The position numbers were made by a program, and so were the translations under genes. From Pocillopora damicornis (lineage: Eukaryota), in the NCBI RefSeq assembly GCF_003704095.1, contig NW_020846166.1, forward strand, positions 1 through 64,000: a stretch of DNA of 64,000 nucleotides. Direction: 5' to 3'. Below, one piece after another: positions 1,700-25,862 of the stretch. The first letter of the stretch is position 1, and every line of letters starts with the position of its first letter. A model generated the notes under the pieces. That model did not search any database and was not told the origin of the DNA. It worked only from the letters and a program-made list of their open reading frames with translations.

Positions 1700-1950
1700 C
1701 CAGGCACTTTGAGGGTGTCCACCAGGGAAAAGGCCCAAAACAGGGCGTGATGGAATTATTTGTTCAGAGATTGAAAGTGCTCTCTCAGCAACTTTCAGTT
1801 TCGAAAAACCTTTCCCAGAAGTAGGAAAAACCGAAAGGAAACGCGTTCGTTTCCCACACTGTGTGGAGCCCCCACAGGTTGAAACCACCCCGCGCACGAA
1901 GTGGTTCTCACATAGTGTGTGATGACCGTGATTAAATTTAAAGAAAAATT
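1700..1950 (-). promoter_or_regulatory. Orphan copy of the A-type STING upstream module with ISRE
   Basis: Aligns by eye to ~6435-6670. ACTTTCAGTTTC at 1791-1802. No STING ORF adjacent. Confidence 0.55.
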
Positions 1951-2099: not shown

Positions 2100-4440
2100 T
2101 TGCCACAGAATGAAGTTGAACTGAAAACCTGTTCACTGTCTATGGCTCTTGGAAATTTCCTCACCCACCCTTGGAGGGCCACTTGGAATGGGATAAGGTG
2201 AGCATTCTAAAAGCTCAATTGTACTTGTAGAGGAATTATACCTTCTCTGAGGGATGGGGAAGTGAATTCTTAACATAATCTTCTCTGTGTGAGAGGTGCA
2301 AATAAGGGTATTTGAACATATTCTACACACACACACACACACAAATGGGTATTTGCAAGATGAAGAGGGAATCTCCCTAAGAATTCTTTCAAACTAGTTT
2401 TACAATTAAGGAGCACTAAGGCCTTCCCTGAGTGTTTTTTTTTTCTCTTAGCAGTGATTGATTTGTAACTAAGACTTGTCCATAGTAAAATCTTGGCAGC
2501 TTATTCTACAAATAAGAGAACTTCTGGCTTGAAACAAAAAACACTTAAACCTGTAGGAAAGCTTGAAGGAGGGAGGGAACCTCCTTCAACCAAAACAAAG
2601 TTGTTGGTTATAATTTTTCCCAAACTTACAAGTAATGGTGTTCTAGTACAGTCAGAGCTGACGCACAGGTGCTTTGTGGTAAGTTTTATTTTTAACCCTT
2701 TCAATCTTAAGAGTGACAAGAATCTAATTTCTCCTTAAAGCAGTACTACTGAAATATTTATTATAAAAACCATGAAAGGAAATGATTGCCAACCTAAAAA
2801 GCTGTGATGTTGTAATCAAATTATTGATAATTAAACCCTAAGGTTAAGTGAAAAACATCAGGCTTATTGAAACCAAGGGTATTCAATTAATAACACAGAG
2901 GAAGTAGATGCCATAACAATGCTTGCAAAGTAGGCAATTGGTTTGTTTGCCTGGTCAACCTTCTTTCCAGGAGAAGGGAGCACCTTCATAGAGAGATACT
3001 GAAGCATACAGAGGCATGCAAAGACTGAAAGCGCACAGTGAAATTTATCACTCTTAGTGGGCAGGGATCTTGACATTCTTGGTGTGCAGCTTGTTTCTAA
3101 ATTTGCTCCAGTATTCCTTCCCTGTTGAGCCTACACAGTGGAACATCACTGGCCTTAAGTAGACCTGGGATCTGCATGAGGAGAGTTGAATTAGCACAGA
3201 ATGAAGTTGAACTGAAAACCTGTCCACTGTTTGTGGCTCTAGGACATTTCCTCACCCATCCTTGGAGGACCACTTGGGATGGGATAGGGTCACTGAGCAT
3301 TCTTAAAGCTTAAGCTTATATATAGAGGAATTATATCTCTTCTGGGGGACTGGGGAAGGGCGATTCCAAACAAAATCTTTTCTGTGTGAGGGGTGAAAAT
3401 AAGGATGATTGAACATATTCTACACAAAAAAGTACTTTGGGTAATTGCAAGATTTAGAGGGGATCTCCTTCTGAAGTCTTTCAAACCAGTTTTACAATTA
3501 AGGCTACTTGATAACTGAGGACTTCACTGAGTATTTTTTTTACTTAGCAGTTACTGATTTATAACTAAGATTTTTCTGTAGTAAAATCTTATTGGTAGCT
3601 TATTCTACAATTGAGGGAGCTTTTGGCTTGAAACAAACAAAAAAAAACTCTTAAACCTGTAGCAAAGCTTGAAAGGGGAGACTCTCCTTCAAAGAAGCAC
3701 CAAAGGTGTTGGTTATAATTTCTCTCAAACTTATAAGTACTGGTATTCTAGCACAGTCAGATTTAACACACAGCTGCTTTGTGTCATGTTTTATTTTTAA
3801 CCCTTTTAATCCTTAGAGTGACAAGTATCAAATTTCTCCTTAAAGTAATATTGCTGAAATATTTATTATAAAGACTGTGGAAATAAAGAAAATAAATGCC
3901 AAACTAAAAAGCTGTGATTGAAACACAAATTCTCCTTGTAAGGAAATTTGCAACTGAGAATAGTAGGAAGAATATGCATACTGATATAGAGGTGTAAAGG
4001 GATAATTAATATGTTTACAGAATAAGAGCACAACAATCATCAATTTAAGTATTTCACTGAGCAAAGCAAAGAAAAATGAAAACTGAGAAAAACTAAACTA
4101 TTCAGCCTGTTTTATAAATCTCTGTTCATGTTTACGTTACTATCCCACTGAGGGCTCACTACAAATTATGTAATCTGCTTGGCTATAAGGAAGGGCAAAA
4201 TAAATTAGGCTATAGCCTTCTCCACTTACACAAATTAAAGGCTGTGCCTTTGAATGTTTTCAGAACACAATCAACATAAATCTGCAAGATGAGGACTGTC
4301 CCTTTACTAACCTCTCTAAAAAACAATGTTAGTCTCCTTAACCAACATCAAGTGGTATCTATTATGGGTGAAATAAAAGTATAAGCCACAAGATTTAGAT
4401 AAAGATTTGTAATCAACATCTTTGCCCCTTCAAAGGCTCC
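2100..4440. repeat. STING 3'-flank segmental repeat, internally duplicated (units ~2100-2810 and ~2810-4440)
   Basis: The block GAATGAAGTTGAACTGAAAACCTGT occurs at ~2108 and ~3199 with colinear downstream sequence; further copies at ~7020 and ~7684. Confidence 0.85.
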
Positions 4441-4568: not shown

Positions 4569-6283
4569 TTAGAGCTGTTCTTGTTCTGGTCTGTGCACTC
4601 CATTAGCTTCTGGATTGTGCATCTCAATGTTGGCAGCGTTATGCATCCCAATCAGGACATTTGAGATCTCATTTGGATCATTTCCTGAAATTGGCACTAA
4701 TTCATAAGTCCCTCTGCACTCTTCGGAGTTCTCCAGAATTTCCCTCAATTTTTGGATGAATAACACCACCTATAAGTAAAAATGAAGAGAAGTTCCAGTT
4801 AGATGTGCATCCCACCTCAAACAAATCATATTTATGAGGACCAGTCCTAAGGGGGGGAGGGGGGTACTTCCTAATAAAAGGCTAATGGGGATGTGCTACT
4901 GGATGGCTTGCATTTCCACTGCTAGATTTACTATTTAATAATGGGTTTGCAATTTCAATGCAGTTCCAACAATGGGGTTGCACTCTTCCAGATTTTGGGG
5001 TGAGACAATGTATGCCCAATTGGGAAGATTCATGGTTAAATGAGTCAATTCATTTTAAGATGAGCTACTTAAAAGGCTTTCTAAGGCAGATACATAAAAC
5101 AGAAAGTGACTAAGTTGGGATAGTGAAAGAAACATTCACTTAAAAGCACCTTAGATGGGATCTACAAATGACCACAGAATAGATTATAATGGGTTGAGGG
5201 AGGGTGGGTTCTAAGAGGCCAGTGGCATATACACAGCAGAAATTGACCCAATTACCCAGGGATCAGCCACAATATTGCTTGTGGTAATTAGATCAGGATT
5301 CTCTTCCACTTTGAAAATCAAAGAGAAAATACTAGAAACTTGCCTACCTGATGATCCCGCTCCTCACGATTAAAGGAGGCGTCTGCATGCTCAGACATAT
5401 CATAAAGGGACATCAGAGGTGTGGCATACTCCAAGATAAAGTGGTACCTTTCTACTGTTCCATCAGGGCGGGGCATTTCTATCTTATGTACCGAATGCTT
5501 GTAAATTCTTTCCTTAATTCCACCCCTACTAATTTTAAGCTCTGGGAGATTACCGACCCATTTTACCCTTGGGTCTGCGTCTTTGATGTCAGCACAAGTG
5601 AAGCACGTTTTGGGCAGTAAAATGAATAGCTTTTTCCTTGTTATTTCATAACGAAAAAGCTCCGATCTGCCAATCTGATCTTTCAGTTTTGGCAGTACCA
5701 GCTTCAGATAACCAAAGTAGTAGCTCCAAGCCAGCCCATCAGCCACATTCTTGTTTTCTTTTTCGTTTAAATCCGATGTTTCCACAGGAGAGAGCTGTCG
5801 GAGACCCACAAGGTACAACAACTGCGGAGCCACGAAACAGTTCAGAAAAAAGAAAATGGCGAATTCTGGGCGAGAGAAAACTTCGTATTGTTCATACAAC
5901 TGATAACATAATATGAGAGCGGAAGCAATAGCAGCGACTAAAATACACTTGCCATAATCGAAGGTGAAAGTGGTCTTAAAAATACCCTTCAACTTTCCTT
6001 GATATCTCGTGCGTTTGTGTTTGAACTCCTCAGACAACAGGGGCAACCTTCGAAATAATTCACCGAAAACAAAACTGAGGGTAAGCAGGGCAGCTGTAAA
6101 CACCAGGAAATGAAACTCCTTCTCTTTATCTTTCACCGCGAAGAATAGCGTCGCGCCACTTATCACAACCATAATAGCTGAAGTGACAGTAGCAGTTTTC
6201 CCACGACGCTTGAAAAGTGGTCCAAAGCCGTTATTTTCTTGCTGAGCTAAGTCATCTCCTCGAGGAAGACGATTTTCAGCCAT
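4569..6283 (-). CDS. STING1: STING paralog A (stimulator of interferon genes), 2 exons: 6283-5348 and 4769-4569, ~378 aa
   Basis: N-terminal hydrophobic TM segments followed by STING hallmarks [41 protein letters not shown] and EYATPL. Phase-0 GT..AG intron (CAG|gtaggc ... ttatag|GTG) joins to exon 2 [12 protein letters not shown]... Confidence 0.95.
4851..5258. mobile_element. Putative non-autonomous element with GGGGGTACT...CCCAATTACCC ends in the STING A intron
   Basis: G-run plus TACT at the left end and a degenerate complementary end at the right. Absent from the introns of B, C and D. Confidence 0.45.
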
Positions 6284-6394: not shown

Positions 6395-6560
6395 ATTTTG
6401 GGAATCCCCTAGATAAAAACTCTGACCTTGATTGGCCAGGAGTCTTGAGGGTGTCTTTGGGCTTCCCCCCGCGAGGGGAAATTCGGAGATTGAAAGTGCT
6501 CTCTCAGCAAGTTTCAGTTTCGAAAACCTTTTTCCGGAGGAATGTTAAACCGAAAGGAGA
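6395..6560 (-). promoter_or_regulatory. STING A promoter cassette (kB / CCAAT / kB-like / ISRE)
   Basis: GGGAATCCCC 6400-6409; ATTGG (CCAAT on -) 6431-6435; GGGCTTCCCC 6459-6468; AGTTTCAGTTTC 6510-6521 (ISRE consensus); AAACCGAAAG 6547-6556. Confidence 0.7.
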
Positions 6561-8973: not shown

Positions 8974-9887
8974 TCAGTCTCCTCTTCTTAATCTCTTTTT
9001 GGTTGCACTGTGCATTCCCACAAGGACATCCGCAATCTTGTTTGTGTCATTTCCTGAAATTGGAACCAATTCATACTTTCCTCTGCATTCCTCAGAGTCA
9101 TCCAAAATTTCCCTCAGCTTATGGATGAATAACACCACCTAGGTTACAACGAAAATGGTTTCAGTTGGTGTAAGCATTAGCTTAACCCTTCAGCTCTCAG
9201 TAGTGATTGACCTGTAACTTCTCCACATAATATCCATACATCATCCAGCAAACAGTTGATGAGAATACTCAAACTTATCAGATAGAAGTTGTTATCTTGA
9301 TTTAATGCCAAATTCTAGTGTATAAGCTAGAAAAGTGAATAAACAATCAGATCTTGGGAGTTAAAGGGTTAAAAAAAAAAAGGGTATTAAAAAAAAACTA
9401 CCTCAAAAAGAAATTCTAAGAACAAATATTTGTTATCATATATCTAAAATCACACAACAGATCACACTTGTTCACCTGATGATCCCGCTCTGGACCAGTC
9501 AAAGGGGCCTTTGCATGACCAGACATTTCGCACAGGGACATAAGAGGCGTAGCGTACTCCAAGACAAAGTGGTACTCTTCCACTGTTCCATCTGGGCGGG
9601 GCATCTCTATGCGGTGTACCGCATGCTGGTAACTTCTCTCCAAAATTCCAGCCCTGTTAATTTTACTCGCGGGAAGTTTGCCGGCCCATTTTACCCTGTC
9701 ATCTGCTTTGGATATTTCTTCAAATGCATAGCACGTTTTTGGAAGTAAAATGAAAAGCTTTTCGTCTGTAATCTTATGACGAAATGTGTCCGATTCGGAA
9801 ATACGATATCCCAGTCTTGGCAGCACCAGCTTGAGATAACCAAAGTAGTAGCTCCAAGCCAGCCCATCAGCCACATTCTTGTTTTCT
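8974..9887 (-). CDS. STING1: STING paralog B, 3' part (exon 1 partial 9887-9476, exon 2 9138-8974); 5' end lost in the gap at 9888
   Basis: [17 protein letters not shown]...[11 protein letters not shown]...EYATPLMSL. Same intron position as the other copies. Exon 2 has a +1 indel relative to copy C and ends ...[12 protein letters not shown]. Confidence 0.88.
9182..9372. mobile_element. piggyBac-type MITE (TTAA-CCC...GGG-TTAA) in the STING B intron
   Basis: TTAACCCTT...GGGAGTTAAAGGGTTAA termini with TTAA on both sides. Confidence 0.75.
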
Positions 9888-10344
9888 NNNNNNNNNNNNN
9901 NNNNNNNNNNNNNNNNNNNNNNNNNNNNNNNNNNNNNNNNNNNNNNNNNNNNNNNNNNNNNNNNNNNNNNNNNNNNNNNNNNNNNNNGTTTCAACTCGCT
10001 GTCTGATTGGTTAATTAGGACAATACGTTAAGGTGAGGTGTCTCTGTGGGGATGGGGTAAGTATTGTACATTAATCGACCTAAAACAGATAAACAACTAA
10101 AACAGATAAACAACGGACAAAATTCGAGTGGCGTGTGTTACCCGCAAGTTATGTAGAAGAATGTGTGGGTGCATTTCCCAAAGGAACGAAGGAAATATGA
10201 TCCCATTTGGCACTTGAATTAAACGCCTCTTGATGCCCCTCGATGCTCTTCGGTGAACCAAGCCTGAATATGGAGCAAGCAAGCTACTTTTAACTGTCCT
10301 CCATGTTAATGATGGTATTCGAATTCATGTGAGTTGAGATTTAG

Positions 10345-10508
10345 CAATGGTTCATATGTCAGCGTGCGTTCATCGAGATATGAAGCACGCGGGATGTTTG
10401 GAGAGCACGAAAGGTGCGTAAGAGTTGCTCCAGGCTTCTTGAGCGCTCTCCAAACTTCCCAAGGGCTTCATATCTCGATGGACGCACAGCTGACGTAAGA
10501 ACCAATTG
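10345..10508. mobile_element. Palindromic (hairpin) MITE-like repeat
   Basis: ~60-bp imperfect inverted arms: GTCAGCGTGCGTTCATCGAGATATGAAGC...GTTTGGAGAGC versus GCTCTCCAAAC...GCTTCATATCTCGATGGACGCACAGCTGAC. Confidence 0.7.
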
Positions 10509-10699
10509 TTTTATAACATTTTCAACCCAAAGGAAAATTCTTTTCTCGAGGGATTTGTTTGCTGATGTCATGAGCGTGCACAATAGGAATATGAAGCACG
10601 CTCGTGTAATTGAATTTGATTAGACAAATTTACTAGCTCTGTTAAAAATACCATTGTTAAACCTGTTGGTGACGTAATTTGTCTTTAATTTAATTAAGG

Positions 10700-10975
10700 T
10701 CAAACCTCGTGCTCGAGGTGATTTCAACCTGCGCGGGCTCCACGCGGTGTAGGAAACCAACGGGTTTTCCTTTCGGTTTTTCAGTCCTCTGAGATAGGTT
10801 TTCGAAACTGAAACTTACTGAGAGAGCACTTTCAATCTCCTAACAAATTATTTCATCACGCCCTATTTGAGGATACTACCCAAGCGGGGGACAGCCCAAA
10901 GACAAACACAAGACTCTTGGCCAGTCAAGGCCAGAGTTTTTATTTAGAGGATTTCCCAGGTAAATCATATCGGTT
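10700..10975 (+). promoter_or_regulatory. Second orphan A-type upstream module, upstream of the B promoter
   Basis: Reverse complement of ~6385-6620. GAAACTGAAACT 10804-10815 intact; CCAAT mutated to CCAGT and the proximal kB site altered. Confidence 0.55.
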
Positions 10976-11299
10976 TATGCAGAAGTTTTATGTCATTTGG
11001 CAATAGCATTAATAACCTCTTGATCTTCCTTGTTCTCTTCTATGATCCTAGCCAAGATTAAGGCAGAGCTAATTTTAACTGGCCCTCGCATAAATATGGA
11101 TAATCCAATATTGAAGCAATAGCTATCATTATAAACCCTGATTTAAAATTTTAATTTTTTTCTAGTTTCTATGAGGACATGCAACCTTCCTGTGAAAACC
11201 ACAATTTTTAAACTTGATAGACTTTCAAGGAGTAGAGGGGCTCCAAAAGGTATAGGTTAGGGAAAAGTTTTTATTTTAGTTTTTCATTCGTGAGGGAAA

Positions 11300-11460
11300 G
11301 ATCTCTAGAAACCGAAAGTTGCTGAAAAAGCACTATGAAACTTTGATTAGCCCACCCCTTCAGGGGGGTTTTCCCCCAGGGGTACACCTTATAAACACCC
11401 TGACGTGCTCCTGGCCAATCAGGTCCAGAGAATTGATGTGGGGGATTACCCAAGTAAATG
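11300..11460 (+). promoter_or_regulatory. STING B promoter cassette
   Basis: GAAACCGAAAGT 11308-11319; GGGGTTTTCCCC 11365-11376; CCAAT 11415-11419; GGGGATTACCC 11441-11451. Confidence 0.7.
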
Positions 11461-11569
11461 GCGTTCTATTTGAATAAGTGATCAGCTCTCAACAATTTGA
11501 CGCATTTAGTGGTGGTCAACTTCACGAGTACTACGAGACCATCGAGAGAAAGAAATAGTTTTATCCACC

Positions 11570-11678
11570 ATGGCAGATAATCTTCTTCCCCAAGGAGATG
11601 ACGTAGCTCAGCAATCACATAATAGCTTTGGACCACTTTCCGAGCTTCGTGGAAATATTGCTACGATCACATCAGCTA
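11570..11678 (+). CDS. STING1: STING N-terminal fragment, probably the missing 5' end of paralog B on an inverted contig
   Basis: [36 protein letters not shown] is nearly identical to the N-terminus of copy C. It runs into an N gap and is preceded by a C-type promoter on the + strand. Confidence 0.8.
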
Positions 11679-12615: not shown

Positions 12616-14108
12616 CTATTGCCTTGTTTGCTCATCAGTCTCGTCTTCTAAATCTATGTTGCTCGCACTGTGCATTCCCACAAGGACATCCGCAATCTTG
12701 TTTGTGTCATTTCCTGAAATTGGAACCAATTCATACTTTCCTCTGCATTCCTCCGAGTCATCCAGAATTTCCCTCAGCTTGCGGATGAATAACACCACCT
12801 AGGTTACAACGAAAATGGTTTCAGTTGGTGTAAGCATTAGCTTAACCTTTCAGCTCTCAGTAGTGATAAACCTGTAACTTCTCCATAATATTCATAAATT
12901 ATCCAGCAAACAGTTAATGAGAATACTAAAACTTATCAGGTAGAAGCTGTTATCTTGATTTAATGCTAAATTCTTGTTACTAATTTACAAGGAAATGTGT
13001 TTAAGCTAGAAGGGGGAATATACAATCAGATCTTGGGAGTTAAAGGGTTAAGCTACAACAATCAATTACAAAATTTGTATTAAAAACACTACCTCAAAAA
13101 GAAATTCTAAGAACAAATATTTATTATCATATATCTAAAATTATACAACAGATCACACTTGTTCACCTGATGATCCCGCTCTGGACCAGTCAAGGGGGCT
13201 TTTGCATGACTTGACATTTCGTACAGGGACATAAGAGGCGTAGCGTACTCCAGGACAAAGTGGTACTCATCCACTGTTCCATCTGGGCGGGGCATCTCTA
13301 TGCGGTGTACCGCATGCTGGTAACTTCTCTCCAAAATTCCAGCCCTGGTGATTTTACTTTCGGGGAGTTTGCCGGCCCATTTTACCCTGTCATCTGCTTT
13401 GGAGATTTCTCCAAATGTAAAGCACGTTTTTGGAAGTAAAATGAAAAGCTTTTCGTCTGTAATCTTATGACGAAATGTGTCCGATTCGGAAATACGATAT
13501 CCCAGTCTTGGCAGCACCAGTTTCAGATACCCAAAGTAGTAGCTCCAAGCCAGCCCATCGGCCACATTCTTGTTTTCTTTTTCGTTAAAATCCGATGTCT
13601 CTACAGGAGAAAGCTGTCGAAGACCCACAAGGAATGACAATTGCGGAACCACGAGACAATTCAGGAAAAACAAGATGGAGAAACCTGGACTCGAGAAAAC
13701 TTCGTATTGTTCATGCAGCACAAAACACAGTGTCAGAGCGGAGGCGATGGCGACAACCAAAATACTACCGGAATTATTGAAAGTGAAAGTCGTCTTGAGA
13801 ATATCCTTCCAGTTTCCTCGATATCTCGCGTGTTTGTGTTTAATCTCTTCAGACACTAGGCACAATCTTCGTACCATTTCTCCGAGAACGACACTCAAGA
13901 TAAGTAGGGCTGTTGTAAACACCAGGAAGTGAATCCCTTCTCTCTTTTCGTTATCCTTTACTGCGAACAAAAGCATCGCGCTACTAATCACAACCACGAT
14001 AGCTGATGTGATCGTAGCAATATTTCCACGAAGCTCGGAAAGTGGTCCAAAGCCATTATGTGCTTGCTGAGCTACGTCATCTCCTCGGGGAAGAAGATTA
14101 TCAGTCAT
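12616..14108 (-). CDS. STING1: STING paralog C, 2 exons: 14108-13167 and 12798-12616, ~374 aa
   Basis: Full STING motif set ([25 protein letters not shown]). Intron CAG|gtgaac ... cctag|GTG. Acidic tail [14 protein letters not shown]. Confidence 0.95.
12842..13051. mobile_element. piggyBac-type MITE in the STING C intron (same site as in B)
   Basis: TTAACCTTT...TCTTGGGAGTTAAAGGGTTAA. Confidence 0.75.
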
Positions 14109-15476: not shown

Positions 15477-17685
15477 TCACTGTTCTGGTATTTTCACTTC
15501 ATCAGCTTCCTCATCCATCTCCACATTGGCAGCTTTATGCATTTCAACCAGGATATCTGCAATCTTGTTTTTCTCCTCATCTCCTGAAAATGGAACCAAT
15601 TCATACCTTCCTCTACATTCTGTACTCTTATCCAAAATTTCCTTCAGTTTTCGAATGAACAACACTACCTAAAGGATATGAAAGAGAGAGAAAAAGAAAA
15701 GGATTAAACAAAGTTTAATTATATATAATATAATTATATGTGTAAATAAATCTTGATTATGATCTATCCTTGTGGTGTAGTGCTCGATGTGTTCGCAGAG
15801 TATGATATGTCTAAAAGTTGGACAAATCAATAAGACCTAACTTTTCTGTGAAACCTGCGTTTCACACTTACGCGATCATCAGCCATGAAAATTGGTCTAA
15901 TGACTGCATAGCATGAAACTCAGAGTTACAGAAAAGTTATGTCTTATTGATTTGTCCAACTTTCATATATATATATATAGGTATATGTACATATATTCAT
16001 ACATACATACATATAGGAAATTCATGTTTAACATACAGATGAAATCTTATTTTGCAATTCAAGACTTAATTATCATTTGCTTTGAACATTACAATTAAAA
16101 TGCACATTTTTTGTTCTTTTTGCTCAAAATGACATACAGTTTTTAAACTGTTTGTGAGTTTGTTTTATCAATACAGCACAAGAAGGCAAAGGAGCTGTTT
16201 TAACCACCGAAAAATGGGCTGGGGTAGAAAAATACAGCCTATGGGAACTTTGAAGGAAGTTTTAAACTTTCCTCATTTTACTTTTCTGGTCAATGTATGA
16301 AACAACCAATTTGAATTGCTTTTGGTGTACACATATTTTATCATCAATCTTCAAATTAAAAATAAAAAAAAAAGAACAGAATGTGGTAAGAGCAATTCAC
16401 CTGATATTCTTTTGCTTATTTGTTTTTTTTCTTCCTGTTGTTATCTTAGCCTAAAATCATCTGCAATCCTCCAAAACCTAACAAATACATGAATGCTATT
16501 CCCTGGGTGCTTCAACATCTGGTGTCTGACCTGACACATACTGGTGTCCAGGCTCTATGGCTAATGCATAATGTAAGCTTTCACATTGAGGCATGGAGAA
16601 CTACTTGACAAGCACATAAAAACTCTGAATGGAAGAGATAACATTTTTCACATGCTTCTCAATTGCTTTTCTCAGGCCTGTGGTAGGAGGCAGTAAAAAA
16701 ATTAAATTACATAACAATCCAAGTGTATCAAAAATGGTCACCGCACTACCTGGTGATCCCGCTCTGGAGCCGTTAATTGGGCGTCTTGGAAGTTAGACAT
16801 ATCATGAAGGGTCATCAGAGGCGTGGCATACTCCACAATAAAGTGGTACTTTTCGTTTGTCCCATCTGGCATCACTATTTCATGTACCGCATGCTTGTAA
16901 CTTCTCTCCTTAATTCCTCCCCTGTTAATTTTACTCTCCGGGAGATTGCCGACCCATTTTACCCTGGAATCCGCTTCCTCAATGTCATCACATGTGAAGC
17001 ACGTTTTTGGAAGTAGAATGAAAAGCTTCTTGTCTATTATCTTATGACGAAATGGGTCCGATTCTGATATCCGTTGTTCCAGTCTTGGCAGCACCAGCCT
17101 CAGATAACCAAAGTAATAGCCCCAAGCCAGCCCATCAGCCACATTCTTGTTTTCTTTTTCGTTCAAATCCGATGTCTCTACAGGAGAGAGCTGTCGAAGA
17201 CCCACAAGGAACGACAACTGCGGAACCACGAGACAGTTCAGGAAAAACAAGATGGAGAAACCTGGACTAGAGAATACTTCGTATTGTTCATACAGCCCAA
17301 GACACAATATTAGAGCGGAAGCGATGGCGACGACTAAAATACTACCGGAATTATCGAAAGTGAAAGTCGTCTTGAGAACAGCCTTCCAGTTTCCTCGATA
17401 TCTCGCGTCCTTGTGTGTAATCTCTTCAAACACTAGGCACAATCTTCGTACTATTTCTCCGAGAACGACACTCAAGGTAAGCAAGGCTGTTTTAAACACC
17501 AGAAAATGAATCCCTTCCCTCTTTTCGTTCTCCTTCACTACGAACAAAAGCACCGCGCTACTAAATACAACCACGATCGTTGATGCGATCGTAGCAATAT
17601 TTCCACGAAGCTCGGAAAGTGGTCCAAAGCCATTATGTGCTTGCTGAGCCACGTCATCTGCTCGGGGAGGATGATTATCAGCCAT
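15477..17685 (-). CDS. STING1: STING paralog D, 2 exons: 17685-16750 and 15668-15477, ~375 aa
   Basis: STING motifs ([36 protein letters not shown]). Intron CAG|gtagtg ... tttag|GTA. Confidence 0.95.
15814..15963. mobile_element. Palindromic MITE in the STING D intron, followed by a (TA)n/(TACA)n tract
   Basis: AAAGTTGGACAAATCAATAAGAC.TAACTTTTCTGT is mirrored by ACAGAAAAGTTA.GTCTTATTGATTTGTCCAACTTT. Confidence 0.75.
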
Positions 17686-17799
17686 GGAGGATAAAACTAT
17701 TCCTTTCTCACGAAGGACTTTTCTTACTCGTGAAGTTAGCCACAGCTTAATGCGCCAAATTGAAGAGAGCTAACCTATTACTCAACTTGAACGCCATTC

Positions 17800-17960
17800 A
17801 CTTATTTGGGGAATCCCCTAGATGAATACTCTGGATCTGATTGGCCAGGAGCCTCATCGTGGATATCGACAGGGTGTACCCCCCTGGGGGAAAGCCCTGA
17901 ATTAGGGCGGGTGACTCGAAGTTATAAAGTGCTCTCTCAGCAACTTTCACTTTCGAGATA
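17800..17960 (-). promoter_or_regulatory. STING D promoter cassette, within the divergent interval shared with the SIMC1-like gene
   Basis: GGGGAATCCCC 17808-17818 (reverse complement GGGGATTCCCC, classical kB site); TGATTGGCC 17838-17846; GGGGAAAGCCC 17887-17897; ACTTTCACTTTC 17943-17954 (GAAAGTGAAAGT, IRF-E). Confidence 0.72.
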
Positions 17961-18339
17961 TCTTTCCCAGTGGAATAAAAACCAAAAGAAAATCGTTATT
18001 CTTAAATGGCCCGTCTGGTGTCCACACAGGCTAGAGAATTTGTAAACCCCCCTAGGCCCCTTGTGGAAAAATTTTGGTACTCGCGTGAGAGCCTTACAAA
18101 CGGTTATTCAGCGTTAATATTCAAATACTTGCTATTACGTGAAAGCCAATGAAAATATAAAACTTACAATAGTTTGTTCCTCATTGAATTATTTTTTGTG
18201 CTTGGCGTAGAGAGGAGCATCGAGGAACATCAAGGAGCATCAGGGGACGTTTAAAGCCAGTGCCAATTGACATAACACTTCTACGTCCTTAAAGAAAATA
18301 CATCTACAGAAAGCGAGCATGGTTGTGTGAAAGATGTAA

Positions 18340-21198
18340 ATGGCGCAAAACGACGTGATTGTCATCAGCGACGATGAAGGAGACTTTGTCAACAAAAAGA
18401 TATCGGAGAAAACACAAATTATTGTTATCGATGAGGACGATGACATTGTCGAATTGACGGAAACGACGAGCAATGTCATTGAAACAATCGCAAGTAGTCA
18501 AGTTAAATCTGAGTCTTGTCGTCCGTTGAAAAATTTGAAATTCAGCGAAAATGGCGTTAAGAGGCTCCAAGCCCAGGTAAAGCTCATCGACATTGGAAAA
18601 TCGAAGAAGCCACTGAAACTTAAAGCTGTGAAACCAGAGAATGACGAGGTAGTTGCAACCAGTTCAACCGAATTAAAAGAAACCAATTCATCGGTGCAGC
18701 AGGTGAGAATTGAGATGGAAAGATTCCCGTTCTTCCGATACTTATTCTAAAACAAAGTCTTAGTGTTAATGTATTGTTTGGCCATTGGTTTCTTTTATCC
18801 AAGTACTGTAAGCATATCGAAGTATAGGGTTATACGGAAATCTTGCTGAGTTTTCTTCAGAGCTTTTCTTCTAAGCTCTGAAGAAAATTGAATTTCTTGG
18901 AACAAGAAAAATTACAACCCAATCTCTTTCATTCAGTGTGGTGTCTGGCCAGATCTTCATGAGCATCCCTAATCCAGATAAACTAGTAACCAAGCACAGT
19001 GTTTGGATGTACTTTCTAAACCACAAGGAGGCTTATTAATATCAAGGTTCCTTCATATCATCGTAAAGCTGTTCAAAGTTGGTAATGTTGTTACTTAGGT
19101 TAGTCTTGCTTACTCAGTGGACAACAACTGCCATACTGGGGCTTATACTGGTATTGGCTGCATTGAGTTACCAGGACAACATGTGTTACTTTTCCTGGAC
19201 AGGATGGTGGTTCACTGCAGGGTATCCATTATGCTCACTTACTCTCATGCTTAAAGTTGTGATTGTCACCAACCGGATTCTCTTGACCGAAAAAAAAAAA
19301 AAATAGAAACACTTGAACATTTACAGCCCTGACTGGTACATTTTGTAAATGTTTCATAGTTAGATTAAGAGCTTGAATCAATCTAAGTAGAGGGATATTT
19401 TTCTAATAATCTTGCTTTCCATGAAACCCTACGATATTGAAAGGGGACACAAGAAGAAAGGTTGTGTAAAAACTCTTTGAGGCTTTGTCAAAAGGTTTTA
19501 TAGTTTCCTTGAATTTCTATGGTTTTTTTGGGTTATGATTGGGTCCTCTACAAAAAATACCAAATTGACTTTGACTTTGACTTTTAAAAAAGTTGATGGA
19601 TGCATTACAAGTCTTTTTGCAGTCATCAAGTGTCACTGAAAGTTTGTTGTCTGAGGTGAAGAGAGGCAGTGTTTTGGTTAAGTGTGCTAACTACAAAACT
19701 CTCATCTTTCCTGTTGACTGATTCCTAATTCTCTATATGTTTCCAGGTTAAGACTGAAGAAGTGGATGCACACAATGGGGAGTTAAGAATGAACCTCTTT
19801 GAGAAATTCTGGTCTGGTAAACAAGAAATCATCAGCAACAAACCTGCAAAAGTCATTGAAAGTTTTGATGACTCATACAAACACAAAAAGGCTAAAAGCT
19901 CTTGTCAGTCTCCATCTTCATTAAAGCAGAGGAGACTCAACGCTGAGAGTTTCTCTCCTAAGAAGAGGCCTCCTTTACATGGGATTGTGAGAGATGGAGA
20001 ACTTTTACATTACACAACACCTTTACACTGCACAGTTCCACTGAAAAAATTAGAACTTGCAAGCAAACAAGAAGAAAGCTTGAGCAAAACCTTCACTGAA
20101 AACCAGCTGAATTCACTGCAAGCTCTTAAAGAAGAGAATTTTCACAAAACCTACCTGGAAACTGTCACCAGCTTTATGAGTCCACGTCGTAAGCCACCTC
20201 CATCCCTTCTGTTTTACCTGTTCAATAATATCTTGCTCTCCAAGCAAAGTGGCTGTGGTACAGAATGTTTTAGAATTCTCTTACGGATTCAAGAATTGCA
20301 TCCTGCTGAGGTGGCACAGATGTTACAACAGAAAATTACATGGGAGTTTGTTTCCATGATAGTGAAGCTAGCAGGATGCACACAGTCTCACACAGTGGAA
20401 AGCTTTAAAATGAATGCCTCCATGGCTTTGTCTTTTCTTGTAAGTGTCATGGAAAAGGAAGTTGAGAAAAAGAAAGTCTGCCTTGTCAAGACAAGTGCGC
20501 ACCGATTTTTCTCAGTAGATAGACTTTCGGGTAATTTTCATGATGTTGTAGAGTGGGTTAAAAAGGCCACAGAAGAACATCTCGAGGAACAATTGGACCA
20601 ACATTGTGGGCATAACTTCTGTCCACTATATTTATTACAAAGAATGCTTCAGTTGTCAGTGTTAGTCGGTCAAAGACCAGAGGACACTGCTGTAAGACTA
20701 GCCAATGATTTAGTTTTGGCTTATGTAGAGTTACCATCTATCAAGTATAAAACATTGTTGCTTCAGTCAATACAGTCACATTTATTGAAGACAAAGCTGA
20801 TTGAAATTGTGGTGAAAAACTGTTGTTCTATTGATGAAGAGTTAGAGGAGGAAAGAATGACTAGCTCTGGATTGAAAAATGTGGTCTTAAACTTCAAAAG
20901 ATCTCCACCTCTCTCTGATGGCATTGTTAGCACTACAAACTGTGAAGAATTTGTCATGCTTCTTGCATATTGGCTGCAAAGCTTTATTTTCTGTCACAAG
21001 AGGTCTTTAATGGCAAAAGGAAAAGAATCACAGCGAGTTTTGTCCCTAAATGATGTGGAGGTACTGAGGAGAATTGAACAGGAAGTGTCTATTTTGACAG
21101 CTCGTTTAGAGTTATTATGTGGCTCTACACTCTCCCCAAGAAGCTACCAATTACTGCAATTAATCTTGTCACTAAAGAGTTTTGCACAAATTCCATAG
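18340..21198 (+). CDS. SIMC1: SIMC1-like protein (SUMO-interacting motifs plus Nse5-like helical domain), 2 exons: 18340-18702 and 19747-21198, ~604 aa
   Basis: N-terminal SIMs with acidic flanks (VIVISDDE, IIVIDEDDD, IVELT). The C-terminal segment FMSPRRKPP...ILL...LLRIQELHPA...W resembles the human SIMC1 FVSPQHYPP...ILL...LMKIQQLHPA...W region as recalled. In-frame phase-0 GT/AG intron. Confidence 0.75.
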
Positions 21199-24227: not shown

Positions 24228-25862
24228 TTAGATCTTCTTATTCAAATATGAATCAACGGCTTTCCACAGAGCAGTTATGTTGCCTGCTCCAAATCCTGTA
24301 GCCCCACATCGCTGGATAACCTCCAGGAAAAAGGTTTCTTTGTTAAAAAGTGGTCTAGTAAAAACCTGCATCAAATATCTGTAAAATAACAACAAAAGAA
24401 AGGTAGTTAATTCACCATAAATACCTCCCACTAACAAAATGTTAGATTCCTCTTTGGAATCTCATCTTAACTCACTTGTTGTCAGCATCTTGGTTTACAT
24501 TCATATTTTCCAAAGATGAGGCAGTGCTTTTGCTAGAGGTGAAGCTCTCTGCATCCAACAGAATACCATGTTTCTGGAGAGACTCCACACTCTCTCCTAC
24601 ATCTCTTATTTCCTGCACTTTATCTTCCTGTGAAGTGAGATTGATCTCGTCAGATGTGTCCTCTTAGAAGATTTACCAGTTGCCTATAGGCTCTTGCAGA
24701 AAAAGTTGGGATTGCCTAGCTCCTAAAAACTTTTGTGAAAGTAAAGTCACACCCAAATAAAAGTTCCTCCAAAGACCAAAGTTAGCTGACTTTAGCACCA
24801 TGATTCTGTTGAGAGTGAAACCCTGATACACTGGCTAAGCCACAACTACACTTAAAGATGAACTAATGTGCATGTATGGCAAAAAGGAAGCCAATTGTGA
24901 TGACCTTTCCAAAGATTGTTATCTTGATCAAACACCAAATTCTTCCAANNNNNNNNNNNNNNNNNNNNNNNNNNNNNNNNNNNNNNNNNNNNNNNNNNNN
25001 NNNNNNNNNNNNNNNNNNNNNNNNNNNNNNNNNNNNNNNNNNNNNNNNAGGGTTTATTACACAACCCTGAATGATTTTGTCAATTGAAACAAATGTTCTA
25101 ACCTTGTCCAGGGAGAGGTTCTGCGAAAACGAACTTTACGCCTCCTCCTGGTTCATCGGTGTCTATTCTCAGCTCTGATTCCGAGCAAAACCAATACTGC
25201 ATGGCTGCCAACTTCATCCCGATGCTCGCTCCTTGTATTGAGCTCTGCACAATGAAGCCGTCCGATTTCTCGTCAGAGCTGATATTAAACCTACTAAACC
25301 CAAAACATCGCTCATACCATTTCATTATCGCCTGAGAAGTCCCTAACGAGCATGCAAACGTAATGTGATCAAAGTGTGTTAAAATACGATCGCCAATCAC
25401 TGTATTCTTGTTTGACGTGATCGATGGGGTTACATAATCAAATCCTTCGCGTAACGCTCTCTTGTCACTTCGATGAAAACCCGGCAAAAACACACCGTTG
25501 TAACCAGAAGCATTTAACAATGTGTGAACAACGTTCCCTACAGGAGTTTGTATAACGGCAGATTCCACCACTCCATTGCTATCAGCCAATGTTTCTGGTC
25601 TTTTGATAATTTTCCCGTCATTTCTTTCTACATTATCCACCACATTTTTCACATCTTTGACTTCAAGGGCAACATTGTAAACGGTGTCTCGCTCACCGGC
25701 GCCTTCGCTCAGAACAAAGTTTATAGAGTCCCGGTTCAGAGTGACCCGATTAGGAAAGGAAGACGAAGCAAGCACTCTAAACCCAAAGTGTCCGCATAAT
25801 TGCCTCAAACTTTGCTGAAGATTTTGACAACGTATTTCGACATGATGCAAACGAACCACCAT
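24228..25862 (-). CDS. HPDL: 4-hydroxyphenylpyruvate dioxygenase-like protein; exons 25862-25103, (an exon probably lost in gap 24949-25048), 24627-24476, 24378-24228
   Basis: Glyoxalase/VOC-fold N-terminus, [14 protein letters not shown], and C-terminal [11 protein letters not shown]...[23 protein letters not shown] typical of HPDL. Confidence 0.88.

Follow-up and report, generated by a model that had tools for sequence, protein, structure and literature searches.

How is a STING gene of the coral Pocillopora damicornis related to the gene that faces it across a short interval? Both genes lie in the window analysed here, the first 64,000 nt of contig NW_020846166.1 (assembly GCF_003704095.1; coral DNA, ~38% GC). 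The ATG of the STING gene, copy D of an array, is at 17685 on the minus strand and that of a SIMC1-like gene is at 18340 on the plus strand; as the plus-strand open reading frame (ORF) starts at 18340, the distance from ATG to ATG is 655 bp, which leaves 654 bases in between. The initial annotation had described this head-to-head arrangement and had placed an IRF element (IRF-E) at 17943 between the ATGs. We found both as described, with a kB site and a CCAAT box likewise inside the interval. The annotation also suggested that a bidirectional promoter may co-induce the two genes as a small defence-island-like unit.

Features of the interval:
17808..17818, no strand assigned: palindromic kB site GGGGAATCCCC, 123-133 bp upstream of the STING D ATG
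17840..17844, minus strand (STING sense): CCAAT box in CTCCTGGCCAATCA, unchanged across the four STING promoters of the window
17923..17929, plus strand (SIMC1-like strand): TATAAAG, 33 bp before the distal SIMC1-like transcript ends
17943..17954, minus strand: interferon-stimulated response element (ISRE)/IRF-E GAAAGTGAAAGT, from motif search
18250..18305, plus strand: SIMC1-like proximal block with a CCAAT/ATTGG element, from interval alignments; likely a core promoter or 5′ untranslated region (UTR) element

We lean, with moderate confidence, towards an ancient divergent STING/SIMC1-like pair with two back-to-back promoter modules, in which STING would have its own cassette, with a probable spill-over to the SIMC1-like gene. 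The interval could also be one shared bidirectional immune promoter, making STING and the SIMC1-like gene an obligatorily co-induced two-gene antiviral unit in which a cytosolic cyclic-dinucleotide sensor is paired with a loader of SMC5/6 that would silence viral episomes in the nucleus; we regard this as unlikely. Passive synteny, i.e. an unbroken block with separate promoters where the SIMC1-like gene is a constitutive genome-maintenance factor with no immune regulation, appears doubtful too.

Identity of the facing genes

Gene models:
16738-17685, minus strand: STING D ORF, ATG 17685; Pfam STING_TM and STING_LBD, E 1.9e-40
16744..17752, minus strand: STING D exon 1; coding sequence from ATG 17685 to the splice donor at 16744, 5′ UTR to at least 17752
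15639..15662, minus strand: start of STING D exon 2, the exon beginning at 15662
17962..18702, plus strand: SIMC1-like exon 1; long 5′ UTR form from ~17962, coding sequence 18340-18702
18703..19746, plus strand: SIMC1-like intron; GT..AG joint 18702/19747 in all four RNA runs
19747..21198, plus strand: SIMC1-like exon 2; disordered linker, then Nse5-like helical domain; stop codon 21196-21198

The gene identities proposed in the initial annotation stood. STING copies A, C and D match Pfam profiles PF23417 and PF15009 (E 1e-38 to 1e-41), i.e. a four-helix transmembrane domain followed by a cyclic-dinucleotide ligand-binding domain (LBD); exon 1 of copy D spans LBD profile positions 1-132. RNA evidence came from Logan contigs of four runs from four studies, whose ends only approximate transcription starts; both STING D and the SIMC1-like gene were expressed. 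STING D contigs break at 16744 in the four runs, and the loose ends there map uniquely to the start of exon 2.

The two-exon model of the SIMC1-like gene gives a protein of 604 aa, with a 3′ UTR that extends past 21600; its exons were searched separately, never as a joined protein. Exon 1 contains two or three SUMO-interacting motifs (SIMs; VIVISDDE, IIVIDEDDD, IVELTE), predicted to bind SUMO and arranged as the tandem N-terminal SIMs of SIMC1. Equivalent SIM pairs are kept in the first exon of the coral loci L001-L005 (listed in the next section) and of the sea anemone Actinia, and exon 1 is 65% identical to residues 1-121 of P0002, a 603-aa transcript-derived protein of a related coral.

Exon 2 matched human SIMC1 (PDB 7T5P, chain 7t5p_A) with E 9.7e-15 in phmmer; the same chain was matched by a 14-sequence coral profile with E 2.5e-20, and besides human SIMC1 nothing in these PDB sequence and profile searches was below E 0.1. 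Structural comparison of 19747-21198 with the Nse5-like domain of SIMC1, a check proposed in the initial annotation, was made with AlphaFold2 and Foldseek. The model has a mean pLDDT (predicted local distance difference test) of 66; residues 1-113 are disordered and the helical domain 114-483 is mostly at 70-93. Chain 7t5p_A ranked first (E 5e-11, TMt 0.71, 386 aligned columns), and yeast Nse5 chains 7yqh_E and 7sde_A appeared lower in the list (TM 0.42-0.45). Thus phmmer, profile and fold all point to an Nse5-like C-terminal alpha-solenoid.

A word-based protein search with the 14-sequence alignment gave the same 33 coral proteins, the closest relatives being from Oculina and Montipora; wider relatives were reached by an exhaustive profile search, which yielded 175 representatives of the family. 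Members from Montipora, Ptychodera, Amphiura and Branchiostoma are labelled SIMC1 or SIMC1-like at NCBI, and uncharacterised members are present in Nematostella, Rhopilema, Patiria and Acanthaster. In the P. damicornis genome (234,350,878 bases, 4393 contigs) the SIMC1-like gene is single-copy; an SLF2-type CANIN (PF14816) gene is present on contig C770.

Pfam scans of the two exon translations taken apart (136-aa ORF of exon 1, 478-aa ORF of exon 2) found no domain, including BRCT and ankyrin, and no BRCT or ankyrin domain was found in long members of the family. We rejected SLF1, the paralogue marked by these domains, since they were not found and the solenoid is unsplit.

SIMC1 has been defined by tandem SIMs in a disordered N-terminus and an Nse5-like domain that binds SLF2 (PMC9708086), a definition that the SIM-plus-Nse5-like architecture fits. 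The plus-strand gene is therefore a SIMC1-like gene, predicted to encode a SUMO-binding Nse5-type SMC5/6 cofactor with a possible antiviral role. That it is instead an unrelated helical-repeat protein with acidic and hydrophobic N-terminal stretches, as the missing Pfam match, the identity to human SIMC1 of just ~20% and the disordered start of the exon-2 model might suggest, is very improbable with SIMC1 as the top PDB match by sequence, profile and fold, with the NCBI names of four relatives and with an architecture that agrees with PMC9708086.

Human SIMC1 (C5orf25), the Nse5-like partner of SLF2 in SMC5/6, shares with the coral protein the SIMs in a disordered N-terminus and an unsplit C-terminal alpha-solenoid, but it is longer (872 aa). 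The human protein binds SLF2; for the coral protein, binding of SLF2 and SUMO is a prediction, and an SLF2-type CANIN gene is present in the same genome. In human, SIMC1 and STING1 are presumably both on chromosome 5, tens of megabases apart and not adjacent.

Two observations concern the transcript itself. Two tiny upstream ORFs precede the SIMC1-like ATG (ATG GTT GTG TGA at 18319-18330 and ATG TAA at 18334-18339), and both are present in every transcript form seen. In the 3′ UTR, all four RNA runs have a 27-base insertion after 21420 relative to the assembly, either an assembly deletion or an allele.

Conservation of the pair

We fetched the genomic context of SIMC1-like orthologues, leaving out contigs L011 and L012 as too short. 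Percentages below are identities to SIMC1-like exon 2 of the window; distances are from ATG to ATG where both starts were called.

L001 (coral): 71%, head-to-head, ~420-450 bp
L002 / L003 (coral): 61%, head-to-head, 418 / 433 bp
L004 (coral): 50%, head-to-head, ~2.1 kb, with a retroelement-like ORF inserted
L005 (coral): 43%, head-to-head, ~2.5 kb
L009 (Nematostella vectensis): 32%, head-to-head, LOC116615998 beside nvSTING, 586 bp
L016 (Actinia tenebrosa): 33%, head-to-head, 418 bp

The head-to-head pair was present in every hexacorallian sampled, i.e. in the window, four other coral assemblies and two sea anemones, so that the adjacency is not peculiar to this assembly. The initial annotation had looked to cnidarians and other invertebrates for it; stony corals and sea anemones bear this out. 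The SIMC1-like genes of the jellyfish Rhopilema, the hemichordate Ptychodera and the sea star Patiria have no STING within 10 kb. To judge from the genomes sampled so far, the pair is a feature of Hexacorallia.

Conservation across Hexacorallia favors a shared promoter, as does the compact interval (417 to 655 bp) of the two anemones, L001-L003 and the window; the widening to 2.1-2.5 kb in two corals speaks against it. Passive synteny, in turn, draws support from the conservation of non-immune neighbours and from tolerated insertions of transposable elements between the genes; the head-to-head orientation kept in all seven genomes is a point against it.

The neighbour most widely kept is the third member of the conserved block:
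25098..25862, minus strand: first large exon of a glyoxalase/dioxygenase-superfamily gene (Pfam Glyoxalase)

In the window, L001, L004, L005, Nematostella and Actinia alike, it comes after the SIMC1-like gene and is encoded on the other strand. On the far side of STING we saw an FAA-hydrolase gene in Actinia (L016, 12085-13018) and in coral L005 (969-1526), by which the conserved block becomes one of four genes: FAA hydrolase, STING, SIMC1-like and the glyoxalase-family gene.

Transposons enlarge the STING/SIMC1-like interval in some corals. The retroelement-like ORF of L004 is at 5120-5500, between STING and the SIMC1-like gene; in L001 a hAT transposase fragment (3945-4418) lies beyond STING. 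Three proteins of one non-scleractinian organism, P0042 (SIMC1-like), P0246 and P0292 (both STING), come from contigs with a recorded length of exactly 431,760 bases; these are probably one contig, in which case the genes would be linked there too.

Two promoter modules and their possible coupling

The kB, CCAAT and ISRE elements could be a property of the pair, as the bidirectional promoter suggested in the initial annotation would imply, or of STING. Motifs GAAAGTGAAAGT and GGGGAATCCCC are enriched in the window as compared with shuffled sequence (7 versus 0.54 expected and 5 versus 0.42, respectively), and the additional copies of both mostly occupy the corresponding sites ahead of the other STING genes. 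The cassette recurs upstream of copies A, B and C, with kB-like sites at 6399, 11441 and 14227; in an alignment of the four upstream regions ~300 bp are conserved and the CCAAT, kB and ISRE blocks are invariant.

Positions relative to the STING ATG are also kept outside the window. The kB 11-mer is at -114 to -140 in L001-L005, in Actinia and in an unlinked P. damicornis STING on contig C2287; the CCAAT box is at -138 to -164 in all coral loci, ~25 bp beyond the kB site, and at -181 in Actinia. A GAAAnnGAAA element is at -208 to -269 in the window copies (A and C among them), L001-L003 and a second unlinked STING, on C3358; its counterpart in Actinia is AAGTGAAA at -260. These predicted sites match GGGRNWYYCC and GAAANNGAAA, with position conserved from corals to Actinia.

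The unlinked paralogues, C2287:1392-2330 (L014) and C3358:93605-94553 (L015), are 54% and 60% identical to copy D. Parts of the cassette layout accompany them (kB at -140 and CCAAT at -156 in C2287; ISRE at -258 and CCAAT at -156 in C3358), and no SIMC1-like match was found in the stretches fetched around them. A blastn search of the D interval against these two loci gave nothing; conservation there is at the level of motifs alone.

Where the interval reaches 2.1-2.5 kb (L004, L005), the cassette remains with STING. As its distances to STING are fixed while the distance to the SIMC1-like gene ranges from ~420 bp to 2.5 kb, we read the kB/CCAAT/ISRE cassette as a STING promoter signature and not as a property of the pair. 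A cassette shared by the two genes is thus not supported: each STING copy, linked or unlinked, has it as proximal promoter, which argues against one shared promoter.

The SIMC1-like gene has a conserved proximal module of its own, a second argument against a shared promoter. The block at 18250..18305 is kept in L001-L005, including L004 and L005 where STING is >2 kb away, and in L001-L004 it has CGCCATnTT-type (YY1-like) motifs as well. Such a CCAAT and YY1-like block would fit constitutive expression of a genome-maintenance factor, and its housekeeping-type motifs favor passive synteny. Relative to L001-L003 the window has ~250 extra bases (roughly 17990-18245) between the two modules.

Transcripts supply the evidence for coupling. 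STING D contigs end at 17720 and 17752; SIMC1-like contigs of two studies cover 17962-18699 and 17972-18704, being spliced or running up to the exon 1 donor. The distal end at 17962 lies 33 bp beyond TATAAAG and just 8 bp away from the ISRE, so that a gap of ~210 bp between the outermost ends (17752 and 17962) holds all three motifs, a point in favor of a shared promoter. With ATGs 655 bp apart and contig ends, as approximate starts, ~210 bp apart, the pair is within the <1 kb between starts that is usual for bidirectional promoters. This gap is suggestive and not a proof, since Logan contigs cannot fix starts, strand or level; the same evidence suggests a long-5′-UTR isoform of the SIMC1-like gene that starts beside the ISRE. 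In one run a 30-letter loose end past 17752 was not found in the window and was not at a splice site; it was treated as a chimeric or allelic contig.

Passive synteny is at odds with these spliced SIMC1-like transcripts, seen to begin beside the ISRE in two independent studies, and with the TATAAAG on the SIMC1-like strand, which occurs only in the STING copy that faces the SIMC1-like gene: it is present in D alone, and copies A, B and C have no TATAAAG where they align with it (L002 and L003 read TAAAAT there). On the other side, the SIMC1-like protein is perhaps, but not necessarily, the sole Nse5-type protein here; if it is, its role would lie in general SMC5/6 functions. Pfam detected no SLF1-type (BRCT/ankyrin) domain in the family members scanned, SLF1 being perhaps too diverged for the profile.

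The two-module reading can be put as follows. The pair would have been kept head-to-head since before the split of stony corals and sea anemones. On the STING side, three elements, an 11-bp kB palindrome (about -125), a CCAAT box (about -155) and an ISRE (about -260), would form STING's own inducible promoter, copied in each STING duplication and moving with STING; we infer that this module binds NF-kB and IRF and responds to them. In Nematostella, nvSTING is reported to be infection-inducible (PMC8713801). On the other side the SIMC1-like gene would use its own proximal block, with CCAAT and, in relatives, YY1-like elements. In P. damicornis the modules would abut and some SIMC1-like mRNAs would start ~378 nt before the ATG; when NF-kB/IRF activates the STING promoter, this would then probably raise SIMC1-like transcription through the distal start, with basal transcription from the independent proximal module underlying any induced part. 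Measurable co-induction of the two genes, besides an independent basal promoter, is a tentative expectation that we would place slightly below an even chance.

Several points weigh against coupling of the two modules. Contigs of this kind define neither start sites, strand nor expression level, and their depths cannot rank genes; in the other two runs the SIMC1-like contigs begin only at 18207 and 18301, as would be expected of a proximal promoter acting independently of the cassette. The argument for coupling is one of geometry. The pair tolerates 2.1-2.5 kb of inserted DNA in L004 and L005, so that tight promoter sharing is not obligatory; the block may persist for non-immune reasons, as the glyoxalase neighbour (and the FAA hydrolase in L005 and Actinia) is conserved too; and neither the kB nor the ISRE motif is strictly matched in the Nematostella interval. 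In that interval (L009) we saw the motif GGGTTGCCTGTG twice, at 9759-9775 and 9930-9946, on the SIMC1-like side.

Known systems, meaning and the STING array

The kB and ISRE sites, predicted from sequence in the coral interval, have a parallel in vertebrate promoters of the interferon-stimulated gene type, where an 11-bp palindrome is likewise combined with a GAAAnnGAAA element. The kB site of the major histocompatibility complex class I enhancer is GGGGATTCCCC, the same 11-bp palindrome; p50-type homodimers prefer this site, and the NF-kB of cnidarians resembles p50. A difference is that cnidarians are not known to have interferon.

Animal bidirectional promoters, too, have head-to-head genes <1 kb apart, CCAAT boxes between them and a long-conserved orientation; NF-Y sites are typical of them. 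The coral interval differs in having two modules, an inducible one tied to STING and one tied to the SIMC1-like gene, with different evolutionary behaviour, and in a spacing that is unconstrained in some lineages. Another conserved anthozoan microsynteny with an innate-immune sensor beside a second gene is the CARDIB-RLRb linkage (bioRxiv 10.1101/2025.11.22.689925). Its genes are different and it was functionally tested, whereas the STING/SIMC1-like pair is known here from sequence; that paper has STING in one general remark, and SMC5 is absent from it.

In the literature searched, no paper linked the STING and SIMC1 loci and none described SIMC1 in corals. Conserved head-to-head pairs with a bidirectional promoter region are known; the STING/SIMC1-like pair and the STING cassette appear to be undescribed.

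In human, SMC5/6 is brought to plasmids and to the replication centres of viruses by SIMC1-SLF2 (PMC9708086, PMC12656486), a further point in favor of the shared antiviral promoter; against it, the literature searched shows no antiviral function of SMC5/6 in cnidarians. One might go as far as to suppose that hexacorallians have kept a two-gene antiviral module for roughly half a billion years, one bidirectional NF-kB/IRF promoter co-inducing STING and SIMC1, a supposition that we find distinctly improbable. If this were true, detection of foreign nucleic acid in the cytosol would be coupled directly to the silencing of extrachromosomal viral DNA in the nucleus, and SMC5/6-based restriction would be an ancestral, inducible arm of animal innate immunity. 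We know of SMC5/6 restriction of viral or plasmid DNA through SIMC1-SLF2 from human cells only. The pair offers a concrete and inexpensive test of whether such restriction is ancient and under innate-immune control, and Nematostella, a tractable model, has the pair too, albeit with an interval free of strict motif matches. Even if the genes are not coupled, the cassette is a deeply conserved STING promoter signature for studies of interferon-free feed-forward control of STING, and a confidently identified SIMC1 is extended to cnidarians.

The wider window gives no support to the defence-island idea. The other genes are glyoxalase-family, class III aminotransferase, PDZ/harmonin-like and sideroflexin-like; no cluster of several unrelated defence genes was seen. 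We rejected a wider defence island, the remaining genes being metabolic, scaffold or housekeeping. With metabolic and scaffold proteins encoded in the remainder of the window, the term 'defence island' is not warranted, and even a small defence-island-like unit, as first annotated, is too strong a description of a pair whose other neighbours are metabolic or housekeeping genes.

The remaining STING copies are:
5318-6283, minus strand: STING A; Pfam STING_TM and STING_LBD
9416-9994, minus strand: STING B, broken by N gaps
13107-14108, minus strand: STING C; Pfam STING_TM and STING_LBD

On present sampling the four-copy array is found only in the lineage of the window, with copy D in the ancestral position. 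The piece 9988-11678, flanked by two N gaps, is apparently in inverted orientation in the scaffold; it holds the missing N-terminus of STING B (11570-11674, plus strand) and its promoter cassette (10920-11569, plus strand), the C-terminal part being 9473-9886 (minus strand). Near the start of the contig there are a kB-like site, GGGGGTTCCCC (1048-1058), and an ISRE, GAAACTGAAAGT (1791-1802, minus strand), which may be the remnant of a fifth STING-type promoter beside the N gap 1426-1525.

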